The notes under the pieces are model-generated. The model saw only the letters and a list, made by a program, of their open reading frames with translations, made no database searches and was not told the DNA's origin. A DNA stretch of 24,893 bases, from the sequence record NC_043427.1; one strand, 5' to 3'. Positions 442 to 24,577 of this stretch are shown here, in pieces. How positions within the stretch are numbered: the first letter of the stretch is position 1; every line of letters starts with the position of its first letter. The position numbers and the translations under genes are program-made.

Positions 442-1068
442 ATGGGTAGGATTACTGTTGAGGAAGAGAGTGAGGTAAAGAAGGCTGCAAAGCGGGAGTC
501 TAGCAAGGAAGCATTAGACGTTGGGAGGCCTCTAGGCCCATTAAAAAAAGCGTATCCTGAGGCGTTTGAGAAGCTTACAGCCCTGGAGCACGCTACAGGG
601 AAGAAGAAGATAGAGATAATGGCTGAAGCAATAGAGTTCTATGCGGAACACGCCTTATTGGGGGAGGCTTTCAAGCGGATTAGGAATCTAGACCCGGATG
701 ATATTGAGGCTATATGGATAGTGTTCAACTATTTCGAGATGAAGGCGTGGAAGAGGCAGATGTTCATGGCTAAGGAGCTGATACAGGGAACAATAGGAGA
801 GGTCCTCAGGTGGAGGGAGGAGATTTATTCCGAGGCTTGGGAGCAGGCTAGGCAGTATTACGAGGAGAGGATTAGGAGGATGCAGCAGAGGGGAGACGAT
901 GCTAGGAGGAGGAGGGTGGAGGAGATAACAGAGAAGATTCTAGCGAGGCTTGAGCCTTTAGTTGAAGCAATGGTGGAGCAGATGCTTGCTCCAACTATGA
1001 AGGCAGCAGGGGTTAAAAAGAGGCCTATGGAGAATGTTAAAGTTACGGTAGAGGGCCTTGAGGATTAG
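442..1068 (+). CDS. Ribbon-helix-helix-like DNA-binding protein with C-terminal coiled coil
   Basis: EAFEKLTALEHATGKKKIEIMAEAIEFY fits RHH helices A/B; E/R-rich heptad region follows; AGGTGG RBS. Confidence 0.6.
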   Translation: MGRITVEEESEVKKAAKRESSKEALDVGRPLGPLKKAYPEAFEKLTALEHATGKKKIEIMAEAIEFYAEHALLGEAFKRIRNLDPDDIEAIWIVFNYFEMKAWKRQMFMAKELIQGTIGEVLRWREEIYSEAWEQARQYYEERIRRMQQRGDDARRRRVEEITEKILARLEPLVEAMVEQMLAPTMKAAGVKKRPMENVKVTVEGLED

Positions 1069-1294
1069 AATTGTAACTGAGGATTATGTTGCAATCATTT
1101 CTGTTAGAAGGGCAGCTTACCTCTATCCTCTTCTCCACTGTTTTGACTACAGGGACCCTAGGAGGTGTGTGATTGAGACTCTGAAGAGAAGAGGATATAC
1201 TGTCAAACACGGTTATGTTGATGAGCTAGGGGAGGTAATCGAGACTGAGAGGCATAAGATAGTTATTCAATATAATGAAAGAAAGGGTGATTGA
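1058..1294 (+). CDS. Hypothetical protein (78 aa)
   Basis: ORF overlapping the previous stop, in the same operon. Confidence 0.65.
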   Translation: MRIRIVTEDYVAIISVRRAAYLYPLLHCFDYRDPRRCVIETLKRRGYTVKHGYVDELGEVIETERHKIVIQYNERKGD

Positions 1295-1309
1295 GGATTG
1301 GTGAGGGGT

Positions 1310-1837
1310 GTGGCTAGAGAAAGAGAAGCGGGGTTTGAAAGGGTAATAGGGCTTGTTCTCACGCTTCCCCTAGTGCTTGTGATGACATGGCTCATATTCA
1401 ATGCAGCGGTAGCATTCGCTCAGCGAAAGGAGGAGACAGTTCAGGCTGGGTTGAAGGCAATAGAGACGTATAATGAGAGCACTGCTGTTGAGATACCTGA
1501 GGGCCCGATTGATTATCCTGTTGCCGTATTCGAGCCGGTTAATGGTGCTAGTCATTTCTCATACATTGAGGGCATAAAGATTGAGGACCTGAACCCAGGA
1601 GGATTTGATAGGATTATGGTTGCTGTAGAGGCGGAGCTGGGAAGCGGGGCAAGGGCAACTATAGTTCCGCCTACAGAGATAGCTGGGCCTGACACGCTTA
1701 GGTGGGTCCTTGACAGCGTCCCAACGGGTGATACTATAAAGAAGGTCCTCGTGTATATCTGGGGAGAGACGTTTAGAGCAGACCAGACCGCAACTGCAAC
1801 GATAAGGGTAACTGGGCTCCAGGCGAGGGTAACTTAA
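1310..1837 (+). CDS. N-terminally membrane-anchored beta-rich protein, putative virion/surface protein
   Basis: Hydrophobic helix VIGLVLTLPLVLVMTWLIFNAAVAFA then a beta-strand-rich domain; GTG at 1310 follows GGTGAGGGG; N-E-S sequon. Confidence 0.65.
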   Translation: MAREREAGFERVIGLVLTLPLVLVMTWLIFNAAVAFAQRKEETVQAGLKAIETYNESTAVEIPEGPIDYPVAVFEPVNGASHFSYIEGIKIEDLNPGGFDRIMVAVEAELGSGARATIVPPTEIAGPDTLRWVLDSVPTGDTIKKVLVYIWGETFRADQTATATIRVTGLQARVT

Positions 1838-1843
1838 TAATAA

Positions 1844-2278
1844 ATGGAGCATGATGTAACGATTGGTGAGAGCGAAGTGCCGGTTTGGGAAAGCACGTTA
1901 AAGGGTCTTGCAATCCCCAAGGTCTTCAACGAGCAAAGGACTGGAAACATTAACTTCACGGGGAGCGGGACCCAGGATATCGAAACATTTGCTCCAGCGA
2001 ATGGGTTTGCCTATGTTGAGGGTGTTTATCTCAACTTGCAGAACCCAGGTACAGATGCTGTAACTGTTGATGTTGTTGCAGTCTATGATGATGCAACGGA
2101 AACAGTACTTGCATCCGTTAACCTCTCTGCTGGAGGAGCATTTGAAGACTGGCTAAGGTGGGCTTACGACGCTAAGACGAATGGGAAGACTGTAAAGCAA
2201 CTCAAGATAAGGGCAACTGCTGCTAGCAGCAATTCAGCTCTCAACTACACTGTCAGGGTTACTGGGACAGCACTCTAG
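1844..2278 (+). CDS. Beta-rich putative structural protein (144 aa)
   Basis: T/A/V/N/G-rich alternating beta pattern; sequons NFT, NLS, NYT. Confidence 0.6.
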   Translation: MEHDVTIGESEVPVWESTLKGLAIPKVFNEQRTGNINFTGSGTQDIETFAPANGFAYVEGVYLNLQNPGTDAVTVDVVAVYDDATETVLASVNLSAGGAFEDWLRWAYDAKTNGKTVKQLKIRATAASSNSALNYTVRVTGTAL

Positions 2279-2287
2279 GTGAGTTGA

Positions 2288-2590
2288 ATGCCATTCTGGC
2301 AATCAGAGATTATCAAGGTTATAGTCAAGTACAAGGAGCCAGCAACAATAGAAAATGAGAAGGTTGAACGAGGGATACTAGAGACTGGTAACATTAGCTG
2401 GAGCTCGGGGGCCATAAACGAGTTCTTACTACTTCTTAACCCAAAGGGAGTTATGGATGTAGATTCGAAGAAGCAGCCAACACCATTTATGAATTCCGGA
2501 GGCAGGCCAACTGGGAACCACTTTAACTTAAACGCAAAGGCATCATATGAACACATTCCTCTTATTACATTCTCTGTCGAGGCTGCATAA
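2288..2590 (+). CDS. Hypothetical protein (100 aa)
   Basis: ATG after GGTGAG RBS; C-terminal half looks less gene-like. Confidence 0.6.
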   Translation: MPFWQSEIIKVIVKYKEPATIENEKVERGILETGNISWSSGAINEFLLLLNPKGVMDVDSKKQPTPFMNSGGRPTGNHFNLNAKASYEHIPLITFSVEAA

Positions 2591-2634
2591 GATTATTAAT
2601 AAAAGGAGCCTCTCATAATCTGTGGTGCTTTGTC

Positions 2635-2766
2635 ATGAGCTTTAATGTCCCTACCGAGGCTGTCTCGAAAGCTAGCCTGGACGACCCCAATTGGGGGACA
2701 GGGGCCCATGAAATATTGATAAGCAAAGATTCACTTACTGAACTAGTTGAGAAAGGCACGGCTTAG
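2635..2766 (+). CDS. Possible small hypothetical protein (43 aa, MSFNVPTEAVSKASLDDPNWGTGAHEILISKDSLTELVEKGTA)
   Basis: Fills the gap between neighbours; the frame is open from 2551, so it could be a frameshifted tail of the upstream gene. Confidence 0.3.
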   Translation: MSFNVPTEAVSKASLDDPNWGTGAHEILISKDSLTELVEKGTA

Positions 2767-2774
2767 GGGGTGGT

Positions 2775-3686
2775 ATGATGCCTCTATACAAGATTGAGGT
2801 GGGGAAAAGTAGCATAAAGGGTATTGTTGATGTTAATGGCGGTGTTAGAAGGAATCTCCAGCTTAGGCAGTTCTGGTCTCTCTTAACATCAATATTGCTT
2901 GACACGTCAGTAGCTCTCAGGGATACTGGAGGTTCTCAATATTCTGTTAACTATGGGAGTTCAAACCCGGACCTGGATGCTAGGATTGTGTTGGGCCAGG
3001 GAACGGACCCTCCTTCGTTTGGGCAGTATAACCTTGTGCAGTACTCGAAGGAGCTGCCTACAAACAAGGTTGTATCTGATGTCTCAGGTACTCCTCCATA
3101 CACGAGGGTAACTCTTTCAACTACTGCTGACATAGATGCACAGGAGCTCGGGATTAGGCAGGATATAAGATACTATTACCTGCTTACTAGGACTGTTCAG
3201 CAAGTAGCAATAGGAGACGTTCTGAACTATCATTTAGAGTTTAAGCAGCCCTGGCTGAAGAACTTTGCTTTATTCTGGTTTGGTAAGCTGAATAAGAGCA
3301 ATGTTGATGGGGTATTGGATGTTACTGGAGCTAGTAGGACGTTGAGGACGGCTGGGGATACAACTGCTGGAACTATGAGGCTGCTAATAAGCGAGGATAT
3401 TATAACGTGGAGCCCTACACTATATTCAATACCAAATGCGGTAGAGCTGACTGATTATCATTGGACCTTCTGGAGCAATGACAACTATGTTGTGCTAGTG
3501 TATCTTGCTAGCATAATACCGGCAGTAACTATGACGGTGAACACTATCGGGATAGTTCAGAGACTGTATGACTCGGGTGGGAACCAGTTTGATGCTCTCC
3601 TAGCTGCTTTGGACATATCATCCAGCCCATTGACCTTAGAAGCAAACAAGCACAACTTCATAATGCTGAAATTCGTGTTCCACTAG
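2775..3686 (+). CDS. Putative virion appendage/tail-fibre-like protein with a two-fold internal repeat
   Basis: IVLGQGTDPPSFGQYNL...AQELGI...LLTRTV resembles tail-collar/baseplate domains; the second half repeats the pattern (VLDVTGAS...NTIGIVQ). Confidence 0.5.
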   Translation: MMPLYKIEVGKSSIKGIVDVNGGVRRNLQLRQFWSLLTSILLDTSVALRDTGGSQYSVNYGSSNPDLDARIVLGQGTDPPSFGQYNLVQYSKELPTNKVVSDVSGTPPYTRVTLSTTADIDAQELGIRQDIRYYYLLTRTVQQVAIGDVLNYHLEFKQPWLKNFALFWFGKLNKSNVDGVLDVTGASRTLRTAGDTTAGTMRLLISEDIITWSPTLYSIPNAVELTDYHWTFWSNDNYVVLVYLASIIPAVTMTVNTIGIVQRLYDSGGNQFDALLAALDISSSPLTLEANKHNFIMLKFVFH

Positions 3687-3693
3687 CTCGGCT

Positions 3694-3706
3694 AAACCCT
3701 TATCAT
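3694..3706 (+). promoter_or_regulatory. Putative archaeal promoter (BRE/TATA-like)
   Basis: AAACCCTTATCAT in an intergenic gap about 40 nt before ATG 3741; the same AAACC(C)TT(T)A pattern recurs at 15438, 20537 and 21673. Confidence 0.45.
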
Positions 3707-3740
3707 AACTTTTTTGCTCTTACCTATTCTAGGGGTGCAT

Positions 3741-4526
3741 ATGAAGAGCGTTACGGCAGACCTTCCTTACCCCTACAAGTATGCTCATTGGCTCTGTGTA
3801 TCTATGAGAGCTAAGAGTATGAGTTATGAGGACAGGCTGGAGGCAGCCAGACAATGTTTAGCTGAGGGTAAGACGATAGGAATAGTAAACCTGTTTGGGC
3901 TCAAGCAGCCGTTGGACAGTCAGGGTTACAGGTACAGGTTTGACGGGGTTGCTTCAGTTGTTAGGAGGGATTCTAGGGTAGAGGTTGTTACTGAGAGGAG
4001 AGAGCGGGTTCCAGAGACGGTTTGGGAGAGGCTTGGTATGAGTGAGGAGCAGTACAGGCTGGGCATGAACTACTATAAAACTACTGCAAAAGAGCTGGCT
4101 GGAATATTTGATGTAAGCCTTGAGGAAGAGATTGAGAAGCTGTATAATAAGGCTTATGGGAGGATGACTCCTGAAGAGTTTGGAATAGAGCTTGCAAGGA
4201 TGATTAAGGACAGGCTTTTACAGCTTGTAAGAGAAGCTAGGAGGATGCAGGATGTTTTGAGAATGCTTGAGGAGAGGTATGGCATTAGGCTAGGCATAGA
4301 GGAGCCAACCGAGTTCATAAGGATTGTGGAGGAGGCTAGCCCTAGCAGCGTTATATCAATCCTATTCAAGGAGAACATCTACCAGATTGTCAGGTGGTAT
4401 AACAGGTTGAAGCGTGTTACAGAGCATGTCGAAGTTATAGAGAAGGCTGAGGAGTCTCTGAGGACAGGGAAGCTGCTAGTATCAGAGGAGGAGCTGAAAA
4501 GCTGCTTGAGGGCCTCCCAGAGCTAA
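3741..4526 (+). CDS. Hypothetical protein with N-terminal His/Cys domain (paralog of 24377-24577) and helical C-terminus; 3' end possibly frameshifted
   Basis: ATG 3741 follows GGGGTG; DLPYPYKYAHWLCV...AARQCLAEGKTIGIV aligns with the 24377 ORF. Confidence 0.75.
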   Translation: MKSVTADLPYPYKYAHWLCVSMRAKSMSYEDRLEAARQCLAEGKTIGIVNLFGLKQPLDSQGYRYRFDGVASVVRRDSRVEVVTERRERVPETVWERLGMSEEQYRLGMNYYKTTAKELAGIFDVSLEEEIEKLYNKAYGRMTPEEFGIELARMIKDRLLQLVREARRMQDVLRMLEERYGIRLGIEEPTEFIRIVEEASPSSVISILFKENIYQIVRWYNRLKRVTEHVEVIEKAEESLRTGKLLVSEEELKSCLRASQS

Positions 4527-4605
4527 GGGCAAGGTATGAGAGGCTATTACAGCAGTTTAAGGGAGGGCATACAGGTTTGAGATTCCAGGCTATGCTGTCG
4601 AGGAC

Positions 4606-5829
4606 TTGAATCATGTCTTTAGTATTAGTGGTGGGGATGTGTTTATAGTTCCATCTAGCTATGAAGTAGCATTTGTAACTCTCAACCCTGAATATACTGT
4701 AGCACTTGCCCTCTACCTCGACGTGAAGGTCGAGGGAACACCATTCCCCGTGAAGATTAGTAATGAGATAGTGCTAGAGCCGGGAGAGGTGGAGGTTAGG
4801 GAGAAGGCTGGGGTAGTAGAGGTTGTAGTAGCAGGAAGGAAGTACAGTGGTGCTCTGGCAAATCCAGAAGAGATACTGATGCCAGCGAAATTTGAAACAG
4901 TAGACATGCTCACAATTAGAGTTGATGTTGATGTGTTGAGGCTCATGAGGGACGTTAATACTGTAGCTTTATCGCTTGATGAGGATGTAGGCCTTGCTGA
5001 AGGAGACAACTGGGCTGTCATCGAGTTTGACAAGGATGGCAAGTTTGAGGCCGAGGCAGTGTTTCACGGTCGCTGGATAAGGCAGGCAGTACCTCCGAGC
5101 GTGTTTAGGGCGAGGAAGGATACAGTAACTATGAGGATTGCAAGGGATAGGCCTGTTATAGTTGAGGGTTATACTAGAGCTGGGCAACGGTTTGTTGCTG
5201 CAATAGGGCAATCTGTCGAGTCCCCAGGAATCCCATCAAGGTTCATATATCTTGAGCCAGAGTACATGAGGCCTAGTGAGCTCCTAGGCGTGCTTGAACT
5301 TGCATTTGATGTGGTGCTAGACTATTATAGCATATATGGAGTATTTACGCATTATGATTTCTTCAGTATAGGGCTCTCTAAAGGGGCTTCAGGAAGGTAC
5401 AGGTTGAGGCATAGCTTGCATGTGCCCAGGCCTATTAAGAGGGCAGTTGATATTGCAGGGGGGCTTCAAGCAGCACCGAGAGACGGTGTTTTAGACGTTA
5501 ATGGAGCCTTGCTAGAAGAGGTTGAGGAGCTACCTCGGGACATAGCAGAGGCAAAGGCTAGAGTAGAGGAGTATCAAATAGTTGAGGTATTCAACGTTAG
5601 AACGAAAGTGGATAGAGCTGAAATCAGGGATGGGGAGTTAATACTGTACAAGGGGAGGAGCGAGGTTCTAAGGATAAGCGTGCCTATATCAGGGGACTTT
5701 AGATTCGATAGCGAGCTGATACGGTACTTCACTCCAGGGGGGATAACGTTGATGGAGAGGGATGGGGAAGTTGCGTTGAGGTTTGAGAAGAGCTATAACA
5801 CATGGCTATTCGTGGAGGGGGTGAGATAA
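4606..5829 (+). CDS. PCNA/sliding-clamp-like protein, apparently two clamp-like units in tandem
   Basis: VAFVTLNPEYTVALALYL, RKYSGALANPEEILMP, LAEGDNWAVIEF and EAVFHGRWIRQAV...DTVTMRIARDRPVIVEG follow the archaeal PCNA motif order; the frame is open from 4561. Confidence 0.6.
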   Translation: MNHVFSISGGDVFIVPSSYEVAFVTLNPEYTVALALYLDVKVEGTPFPVKISNEIVLEPGEVEVREKAGVVEVVVAGRKYSGALANPEEILMPAKFETVDMLTIRVDVDVLRLMRDVNTVALSLDEDVGLAEGDNWAVIEFDKDGKFEAEAVFHGRWIRQAVPPSVFRARKDTVTMRIARDRPVIVEGYTRAGQRFVAAIGQSVESPGIPSRFIYLEPEYMRPSELLGVLELAFDVVLDYYSIYGVFTHYDFFSIGLSKGASGRYRLRHSLHVPRPIKRAVDIAGGLQAAPRDGVLDVNGALLEEVEELPRDIAEAKARVEEYQIVEVFNVRTKVDRAEIRDGELILYKGRSEVLRISVPISGDFRFDSELIRYFTPGGITLMERDGEVALRFEKSYNTWLFVEGVR

Positions 5830-6293
5830 TGAACATAACTATGGAGGACATACAAAGGTTTATGGTTGGCTCGATAGGGATAGCTCTGATAGTTGCTATG
5901 GCAACGTTCATGAGAGAGGCTTTACTAGGTGATGAGCAGCCAAAGAAAACAGTTAGGGTTGTCCCTGGGGATGCTGCTTCTGCAATCCACGAGGTCCTAA
6001 GCACTAATGGCTATGTTTACATTGCAGTTGGGGAGGGGTGCAGCTACTGTCCAATAGCGTATTCAATGGTTGAGCTTGCTGGGATTCCAGTGAGAAAGAT
6101 AGTTGATATAAGGAACCTTAGAGACGAGGATGAAGTATGGAAGTTTGCAAGGACAGTTGGCATATCATCTGCTCCAGCACTTCTTCTTGTCGAGGATGGC
6201 AGGGTTGTAAGGGTTATAGAGTTCTCTGGGGATGTTGAAAAGGATAGGGAGGAGATTAAACGTGAGAAAGCTTATCTTGGGGCTGCATTCTAA
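5829..6293 (+). CDS. Membrane-anchored thioredoxin/glutaredoxin-fold protein
   Basis: N-terminal hydrophobic helix, CSYC(P) CxxC, cis-Pro loop GISSAPALLLVEDG. Confidence 0.85.
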   Translation: MNITMEDIQRFMVGSIGIALIVAMATFMREALLGDEQPKKTVRVVPGDAASAIHEVLSTNGYVYIAVGEGCSYCPIAYSMVELAGIPVRKIVDIRNLRDEDEVWKFARTVGISSAPALLLVEDGRVVRVIEFSGDVEKDREEIKREKAYLGAAF

Positions 6294-6636
6294 AGGTGGC
6301 AGGGTTTCGTTCAGCGATTTCATTGAGATTGTAAAGAAGGAGAGGGCTTTTGCCCTGATATCAGGCCCTAACTGTAGGGAGTGTAGTGTGTTGAAGCACT
6401 TGCTGAAGGAGAGTGGTGCTGAGAGGTTCATAAAATACGAGCTTGAGATACCGGTTGATGATGAGGCTATTGAAGCTGCTCAGAAGGCGGGCATAATGCA
6501 TATCCCGATAATAGTTGACTGCTTCAGGGAGTGTGATATGATTATTGATGTGGACCCTTATAGGCAGTTTGAAGAGCTTGTTAGGAGGCTTGTTGGCTAC
6601 GGTTTAGCAGAGGTTAGGGAAGAGAAGGAGTTATAA
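6262..6636 (+). CDS. Thioredoxin/glutaredoxin-fold protein
   Basis: ALISGPNCREC CxxC and GIMHIPIIV; GTG 6262 follows GGAGG. Confidence 0.75.
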   Translation: MRKLILGLHSKGGRVSFSDFIEIVKKERAFALISGPNCRECSVLKHLLKESGAERFIKYELEIPVDDEAIEAAQKAGIMHIPIIVDCFRECDMIIDVDPYRQFEELVRRLVGYGLAEVREEKEL

Positions 6637-24136: not shown

Positions 24137-24398
24137 AGAGCTAAAACAGAGAATTATGAAGGTCTTGCAGAACGGGAGCAAGACTCTTGTCGAGGTTCAT
24201 TTTTTAGTTGAGAAGACTGGCTTCGTTGTTTCTTACAGGCGTCTCAAGCTGGTTGTTGACGAGATGGTTCAATCTGGGCTTATAGAAAAAATGAGGGACG
24301 GAAAAAAGGTAAAGTATAAGATAAAAGAAGGGCAGCATAAGATATGGCTCGAATACCCCTGGAGAGGTGAGGAAGAGTGGGCAAGTATGCGACTCTAA
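24093..24398 (+). CDS. Winged-helix DNA-binding protein
   Basis: RIMKVLQNGSKTLVEV...LKLVVDEMVQSGLIEKMRDGKKVKYKI. Confidence 0.8.
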   Translation: MGLKLEPAVTAASDEELKQRIMKVLQNGSKTLVEVHFLVEKTGFVVSYRRLKLVVDEMVQSGLIEKMRDGKKVKYKIKEGQHKIWLEYPWRGEEEWASMRL

Positions 24399-24577
24399 CA
24401 CAGGACCTTCCCGAGGAGTACAGGAAGGCTCACCCCATATGTGTGGCTAGTAAAGTGGCCAAAATGGGCTACGAGCCTGCAAGGGCTCCTAGGGACGTGA
24501 GGCAGAGAGCAGCCGAGGAGTGTATAAGGGAGGGCAAGCTGCACGGCATAGTGAAGCTGCTAAGCCCCTCGGTTTGA
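24377..24577 (+). CDS. Stand-alone His/Cys domain protein (paralog of the 3741 N-terminus)
   Basis: DLPEEYRKAHPICVASKVAKMGYE...RAAEECIREGKLHGIV; GAGGTGAGG RBS. Confidence 0.8.
   Translation: MGKYATLTQDLPEEYRKAHPICVASKVAKMGYEPARAPRDVRQRAAEECIREGKLHGIVKLLSPSV

Follow-up and report, generated by a model that had tools for sequence, protein, structure and literature searches.

An undescribed domain with two invariant cysteines, encoded as a free protein and as a protein head in Aeropyrum coil-shaped virus and its metagenomic relatives

The window, that is, the whole stretch of DNA analyzed here (NC_043427.1; 24,893 nt), is identical to HE681887, the complete circular ssDNA genome of Aeropyrum coil-shaped virus (ACV, Alphaspiravirus yamagawaense). 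The Spiraviridae comprise a single isolate with no known relationships to other viruses, and no replication or capsid genes have been recognized in ACV (ICTV profile, PMC7416610). Two genes of the window, ORF10-261 and ORF56-66, encode similar stretches of protein (table 1). Residues 3-52 of ORF10 align with residues 6-62 of ORF56 with 23 of 57 identities (40%; 54% positives; BLASTP E 2e-11), and the only gap, of 7 residues, falls in a loop between two predicted helices. When ORF56 was searched against the six frames of the genome, positions 3747-3896 were matched (E 3.8e-8) and no third copy was found. A sequence-only reading had proposed that one domain occurs here both stand-alone and as an N-terminal fusion, with one copy ending an operon and the other preceding ORF11. 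The pairwise statistics are significant and bear out the shared domain, and the gene order is as it was described. Comparison of sequences thus confirms that a real, previously undescribed domain of ~55 residues occurs once in ORF10-261 and once in ORF56-66.

Table 1. Features of the two domain-bearing loci of the ACV genome (window coordinates).
Feature	Position	Strand	Remarks
ORF10-261	3741..4526	+	GenBank "hypothetical protein"; domain head, short beta region, then helical bundle/coiled coil (~residues 100-260)
Domain copy 1	3741..3905	+	N-terminal head, residues 1-55 of ORF10-261; HMM match at residues 2-55
Cys19 codon of ORF10, first invariant cysteine	3795..3797	+	TGT; invariant column in alignment A2
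Cys39 codon of ORF10, second invariant cysteine	3855..3857	+	TGT; invariant column in A2 and A4
Extension limited to long forms	3906..3965	+	Alignment A4; pattern L-K-Q-P-x-D-x-x-G-Y-x-Y-R-[FY]-D
ORF10/ORF11 junction	4527..4605 (79 nt)	.	TAA 4524 ends frame 3 (ORF10); TAA 4558 ends frame 1 upstream of ORF11
ORF11-407	4606..5829	+	Corresponds to the C-terminal half of fused 672-839-aa relatives
ORF55-80, winged-helix gene directly upstream of ORF56	24156..24398	+	GenBank; 22-nt overlap with ORF56 start
ORF56-66, domain copy 2 (free form)	24377..24577	+	GenBank "hypothetical protein"; last gene of plus-strand operon ORF51-56
Cys22 codon of ORF56	24440..24442	+	TGT; invariant in A2
Cys49 codon of ORF56	24521..24523	+	TGT; invariant in A2

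Both copies are basic (ORF56 is 7.4 kDa with a pI of 9.3; the pI of the ORF10 head is 9.1), and Cys19 and Cys39 of ORF10 are the counterparts of Cys22 and Cys49 of ORF56. The conserved letters pointed out from sequence (DLP, AH, CV, YE, AA, C, EGK, and GI) are present, while the proposed His/Cys character reduces to a shared set of one histidine and two cysteines: the shared histidine is H16 in ORF10 and H19 in ORF56, and H56 of ORF56 is replaced by Ile in ORF10. Annotated starts (GTG at 24377 and ATG at 3741) are supported because relatives begin with MGKY or with M.S[IV]TKDLP. The free form in ACV begins with GTG, overlaps ORF55 by 22 nt, and lies behind a strong GGAGAGGTGAGGA stretch (window 24377-24398); in relatives it begins with ATG after a spacer of ~30 nt. 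In ORF10, strands are predicted at residues 64-90, just past the extension that is limited to long forms (single-sequence AlphaFold2 model).

The domain belongs to a small family. A word-index search with ORF56 recovered four clusters of homologues of 62-66 aa (68-88% identity), and the same search with whole ORF10 recovered only ORF10 itself. A profile search of 1.84 billion representatives returned 23 proteins at E ≤ 1e-3, one of them spurious, leaving ~22 relatives. These are free forms of 53-139 aa and heads at the N termini of longer proteins (211, 231, 261 [ORF10], 672, 759, 826, and 839 aa). The spurious match, P0016 (6,656 aa; E 8.6e-14), was rejected as the sum of 24 repeats that each score <4 bits and cover profile positions 5-25 only. 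Its repeat, T-x-T-D-x-L-P...W-x-C, matches the first third of the profile and calls for caution in building a family model.

Across the 26 sequences of alignment A2, which are 34-86% identical to ORF56, three positions are invariant (A18, C22, and C49 in ORF56 numbering) and four more are at least 90% conserved (H19, V23, E52, and G53). His19 is Asn in two members; His56 is present in most and is elsewhere Ile, Leu, Gln, Asn, or Val. The length of the inter-helix loop is highly variable, such that the cysteines, one per helix, are 19 to ~45 residues apart. Free and long forms differ systematically in helix 2 and in the loop (A2 and A4), and each of the subfamilies, free and long, has its own conserved surface. 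In a maximum-likelihood tree, the heads of long forms fall into two clades, both well supported, that branch from within the free forms.

All family-bearing contigs long enough to judge are ACV-like. They share with ACV the ORF2/ORF3-like, thioredoxin-like, and small ORF14/15/16-18-like genes and a GT4 glycosyltransferase, to which a subset adds the protease, the ORF29-like gene, and the tyrosine recombinase. Because these relatives are metagenomic contigs and mostly incomplete, absences among them are provisional. Pattern scans built on alignment A1 yielded no confirmed relative in IMG/VR and none in 185,579 prokaryotic species genomes of GTDB, each species being represented by one genome. 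The literature searched, to which the original description of ACV did not belong, makes no mention of the domain or of relatives of ACV.

Searches for a known family or fold were negative. ORF56 has no family in Pfam, PHROGs, or NCBIfam at E ≤ 1, ORF10 gives chance-level rows only (one in Pfam and one in PHROGs), and the 26 members of A2 together add four single-member chance matches. Sequence profiles (A1, A2, and A3) found no relative in the PDB; a RelA fragment at E 0.55 was dismissed as chance. Structure searches with the ORF56 model were at background level in the PDB by Foldseek (best E 2.5), in 48,161 representative PDB chains by VIA-align wide (best Z 3.4), and in BFVD (best E 1.4). 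In the ESM Atlas, the best TM by query was 0.48 and covered the hairpin only (residues 16-54), and the Atlas's own model of ORF56 has generic helical neighbors only. Searches with the single-sequence model of ORF10, in which the head is poorly modeled (pLDDT 30-54), returned generic helical bundles only, as did those with its helical part (best Z 8.0). The family that could not be recognized by eye is thus equally without a match in Pfam, PHROGs, NCBIfam, PDB profiles, and four fold libraries. The domain is new only in the sense that no described family or fold can be assigned to it; no new mechanism is implied.

In relatives, the long form is a single protein that spans what ACV encodes as ORF10 and ORF11. 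The genes for P0012, P0014, P0015, and P0029 occupy the place of ORF10/ORF11, with thioredoxin-like genes directly downstream as in ACV, and the fused proteins at exactly this position are 759-839 aa in length. P0012 aligns with ORF10 over residues 1-214 (E 1e-37). Two others match both ORFs in order and at an equivalent genomic position, as expected of a Rosetta-stone protein. P0015 matches ORF10 in frame 3 (E 7e-34) and, through its residues 480-700, positions 5041-5685 of ORF11 in frame 1 (E 5e-6); P0029 matches ORF10 in frame 3 (E 7e-21) and, through its residues 348-658, positions 4924-5796 in frame 1 (27% over 320 aa; E 4.7e-11). Lengths agree as well, with 261 + 407 = 668 aa for ORF10 and ORF11 and 672 to 839 aa for the fused proteins. 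The sequence-only reading had noted that the head-bearing ORF precedes ORF11; the link is stronger than was claimed, given that relatives encode both as one protein. A single frameshift cannot join the two ORFs in ACV, because each of the two frames is closed by its own stop in or at the junction. Judged from the reading frames, their separation is therefore either a true split or a state that needs at least two changes to reverse.

Within long-form proteins, conservation is concentrated in the head. The head of ORF10 is 71-80% identical to those of P0012, P0014, and P0015, versus 26-33% for the rest of the protein (global alignment), which shows the head to be by far the most conserved part, as far as aligned sequences can tell. 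Short versions resembling ORF10 occur elsewhere (P0020 and P0021; 211 and 231 aa). Both forms occur together on contig L028: a divergent free form (P0025), which has 36% identity to ORF56 in A2, and a fused form of 839 aa. The duplication therefore predates the split of the ACV and L028 lineages. Carriage of both forms by at least two divergent lineages, ACV and L028, marks the two copies as old paralogues. Contig L019 shares ORF5, 6, 9, and 10/11 with ACV in the same order, with the long form following the block of ORF5, 6, and 9. When ACV ORF4-11 (window 1058-5829) were compared with contigs L004-L018, no match was found on those of the L004/L005/L017 type. By these comparisons, ORF4-11 seem to constitute a variable module.

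The free form is under the strongest constraint of any gene that ACV shares with its nearest relatives. ORF56 is 80-86% identical between ACV and four ACV-like lineages, and for all other shared proteins identity is 27-70% (61-65% for the recombinase, no more than 70% for ORF14-47, and 36-40% for the neighboring winged helix). At the level of nucleotides, the gene is 72-76% identical, with third codon positions 44-47% identical, dS saturated, and dN of 0.09-0.15 between ACV and relatives (0.04-0.15 overall); among the homologues in relatives, dN/dS is ~0.04-0.07. The low identity of third positions and saturation of dS indicate that conservation does not result from recent exchange. Start, length, and position of the free form are kept in 15 contigs. 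These substitution patterns show that purifying selection on the 66-aa form is very strong, and no other gene is as well conserved between ACV and its nearest relatives. Since winged-helix neighbors of the free form and the remainder of the long form are far less identical, the domain is the most constrained element in both of its settings. Its shortness and lack of a known family might suggest that ORF56 is a remnant of a partial duplication and has no function, but this is scarcely credible against a dN/dS far below 1 at saturated synonymous sites in several lineages and against a start, length, and position conserved in 15 contigs.

The genomic neighborhood of the free form is also conserved. 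On longer contigs of relatives, it is always the last gene of a plus-strand operon, preceded directly by a small DNA-binding gene and followed by a convergent gene on the minus strand. The upstream DNA-binding gene encodes a winged helix that in relatives matches F-93/TBPIP winged-helix models, except on two short contigs where it encodes a C2H2 zinc finger. On recovered contigs of the L004/L005/L017 type, which are mostly incomplete, no long form is seen and an ORF3-like gene is directly followed by a thioredoxin-like gene. The free form is nonetheless retained there, and no gene is more conserved; it thus appears to be an autonomous protein that works alone. Conversely, contigs L019 and L020 have a long form and no free form within the recovered stretch.

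These distributions bear on the earlier proposal that the short form regulates a replication protein by pairing with the long form's head. Coexistence of both forms in ACV and L028, as well as physical joining of the long form to the ORF11 part in relatives, are in line with it. However, retention of a highly conserved free form on contigs that show no long form, the reverse situation on L019 and L020, and the failure of sequence models to confirm a clamp-like ORF11 render it improbable, and a role of the short form as regulator of the long one finds no support on the contigs recovered. The proposed replication role rests on ORF11 being PCNA-like. Models of PCNA_N (PF00705) and DNA_pol3_beta (PF00712) matched none of the six frames of the genome at E ≤ 10, and a profile of ORF11 and its relatives found no clamp in the PDB. 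Structural neighbors of ORF11 in the Atlas do include viral and bacterial beta-clamp clusters, at a weak TM of 0.22-0.30 and on a model with a pLDDT of 0.36. With clamp models finding nothing, likeness of ORF11 to PCNA, and with it the replication role, lacks confirmation.

Modeling predicts that the domain is a basic helical hairpin. In the AlphaFold2 model of ORF56 (alignment A1; mean pLDDT 81), helices span residues 20-29, 39-51, and 58-62, with the variable loop between the first two, and a single bridge (residues 18-55) closes the open end of the hairpin. Cys22, at the start of the first long helix, and Cys49, at the end of the second, are predicted to be at the same closed end and would thus be near each other. 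Around the bridged end of the model are both invariant cysteines, the near-invariant His19, the turn Glu52-Gly53-Lys54, and, in most members of A2, His56. A homodimer prediction with two copies of ORF56 (A2) scored 0.00, which counts neither for nor against binding.

The arrangement fits, as a possibility, the suggestion made from sequence that the domain is disulfide-locked or metal-binding. The two cysteines alone are universal, and a disulfide is for this reason slightly the better bet. Proteins of hyperthermophilic archaeal viruses often contain disulfides (PMC4187194). Even cysteine counts only slightly outnumber odd ones among ACV proteins (15 even vs. 12 odd), too weak a bias to serve as evidence. 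Candidate metal ligands in A2 are the invariant Cys22 and Cys49, His19 (at least 90%), the variable His56, and possibly Glu52 (at least 90%) as a fourth. A His/Cys/Cys/(His or Glu) metal site is favored by conservation of His19, Glu52, and Lys54 beyond the needs of a simple staple and is weakened by the replacement of His19 by Asn in two members and by the variation at His56; we regard it as rather unlikely, though worth keeping in view. That the pair serves as something other than a disulfide or metal site is less likely still.

Several known systems resemble the domain in part. TAZ-type domains have helical zinc sites with His/Cys ligands at the ends of helices. Similarly, His19, Cys22, Cys49, and His56 or Glu52 of the domain are near helix ends that are brought together in the model; however, the two cysteines alone are invariant and no zinc-finger model matches. 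SAP/HeH helix-extended-loop-helix modules have in common with it two helices, an extended variable loop, small size, and basic charge, but they share no sequence motif with it, and their sole trace, a match to a SAP domain by Foldseek at E 9.7, is noise (best VIA-align Z 3.4). The disulfide-stabilized small winged-helix proteins of STIV and SSV1 (PMC4187194) are alike in size, in their origin from a hyperthermophilic crenarchaeal virus, and in having a cysteine pair able to tie two secondary-structure elements. This is a shared property and not a family relationship, given that the domain is predicted to be a helical hairpin and not a winged helix. The upstream neighbor of the free form in relatives is an F-93-like winged helix. 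Two candidates were rejected. A CHCH (twin CX9C) hairpin was ruled out because the domain has one cysteine per helix versus two, spaced 19 to ~45 residues apart, and a winged helix or HTH was ruled out because neither copy matches an HTH family and no winged-helix fold is among the matches.

We suggest, at a probability of roughly 0.45, that this is an undescribed cysteine-pinned domain found only in ACV-like viruses, used both as a free protein and as a head, that docks to a target, for which we favor viral DNA or nucleoprotein. The cysteine pair, whether as a disulfide or as a metal site, would lock the hairpin at the ~90-95 °C of the host, making the domain a compact, heat-stable docking head for a conserved macromolecule. 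As the head of a long form, it would tether the coiled-coil and beta-rich body to that target. Viral DNA or nucleoprotein is our best guess for the target because both copies are basic, the free form is in an operon of small DNA binders, and virions contain minor proteins of 5-13 kDa that have no assigned genes (PMC7416610). Targets of free and long forms need not be identical, since each subfamily has its own conserved surface, and the paralogues may differ in binding, since their second helices and loops differ.

The unplaced virion proteins also suit a narrower explanation, in which ORF56 is itself a minor virion or nucleoprotein component, among the unassigned bands of 5-13 kDa, and the domain fixes the ORF10/ORF11 protein to the nucleoprotein filament, perhaps at terminal appendages. 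A basic protein of 7.4 kDa would match such minor components, for which genes are unassigned (PMC7416610). The free-form gene, however, is in an operon of small regulators apart from putative structural genes, and we consider this explanation unlikely; it overlaps with docking to DNA or nucleoprotein and does not exclude it.

Sequence-specific viral DNA binders usually evolve fast. Conservation of the domain is extreme relative to the 30-40% identity of its winged-helix neighbor, and a host protein fits as a target at least as well. The domain could accordingly be an adaptor that binds a conserved protein of the host, for instance a component of the replisome or transcription machinery of Aeropyrum-like hosts, that the free form blocks or recruits and to which the long form brings its body. 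Extreme conservation beside fast-evolving neighbors is typical of contacts with slow-evolving host machinery, and the family is absent from the cellular genomes scanned. But the domain has no recognizable host-binding motif, and its basic charge and its place in an operon of DNA binders point at least equally to nucleic acid. We view a host adaptor as a serious although less likely alternative that deserves more weight than a virion component.

A bolder version of docking to viral DNA would have the domain act as the genome-recognition head of the spiravirus replication or packaging machinery. The free form would tag the viral genome, perhaps at repeat-rich noncoding regions, and the long form would bring its coiled-coil and clamp-like body there. 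This version is a long shot, somewhat less likely than a virion component. If true, it would open a way to learn how the largest known ssDNA genome is copied or coiled without a Rep or polymerase. The unity of ORF10 and ORF11 in relatives ties the domain physically to the sole candidate replication-type protein that has been proposed for ACV. Regardless of its target, the domain is the most conserved coding element common to ACV and its metagenomic relatives and can be used as a marker to find and delimit the group. ORF56, at 66 aa, is small and easily expressed, and its partner would reveal a core step of ACV biology.

Other genes near the domain vary among lineages. Relatives L004-L012 have a gene for a Cas4/PD-(D/E)XK nuclease two genes upstream of the free form, and in some of them a radical-SAM gene and a small gene of RAMP-like type (Cas_VVA1548) are present as well (examples of these genes are at L004:8884-9474 and 6086-6493 and at L006:2526-3239). 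No ACV counterparts of these three were found by tblastn with ACV proteins. The tyrosine recombinase gene is opposite in strand to the ORF56 homologue on four contigs (L004:4727-5950, L008:1523-2806, L012:2223-3437, and L018:2457-3680). In ACV, ORF33-403 and ORF56 are both on the plus strand, and the recombinase gene has therefore been inverted between lineages. The gene downstream of the thioredoxin/glutaredoxin-like gene of relatives matches the catalytic chain of ferredoxin-thioredoxin reductase (PF02943; L004:12580-13248, L021:3617-4177, and L028:8620-9180). ORF13-124 of ACV (window 6262-6636) aligns with part of this PF02943-type protein and matches a thioredoxin model only weakly. The gene for the putatively cysteine-pinned head thus has a virus-encoded thiol-redox pair as its neighbor.
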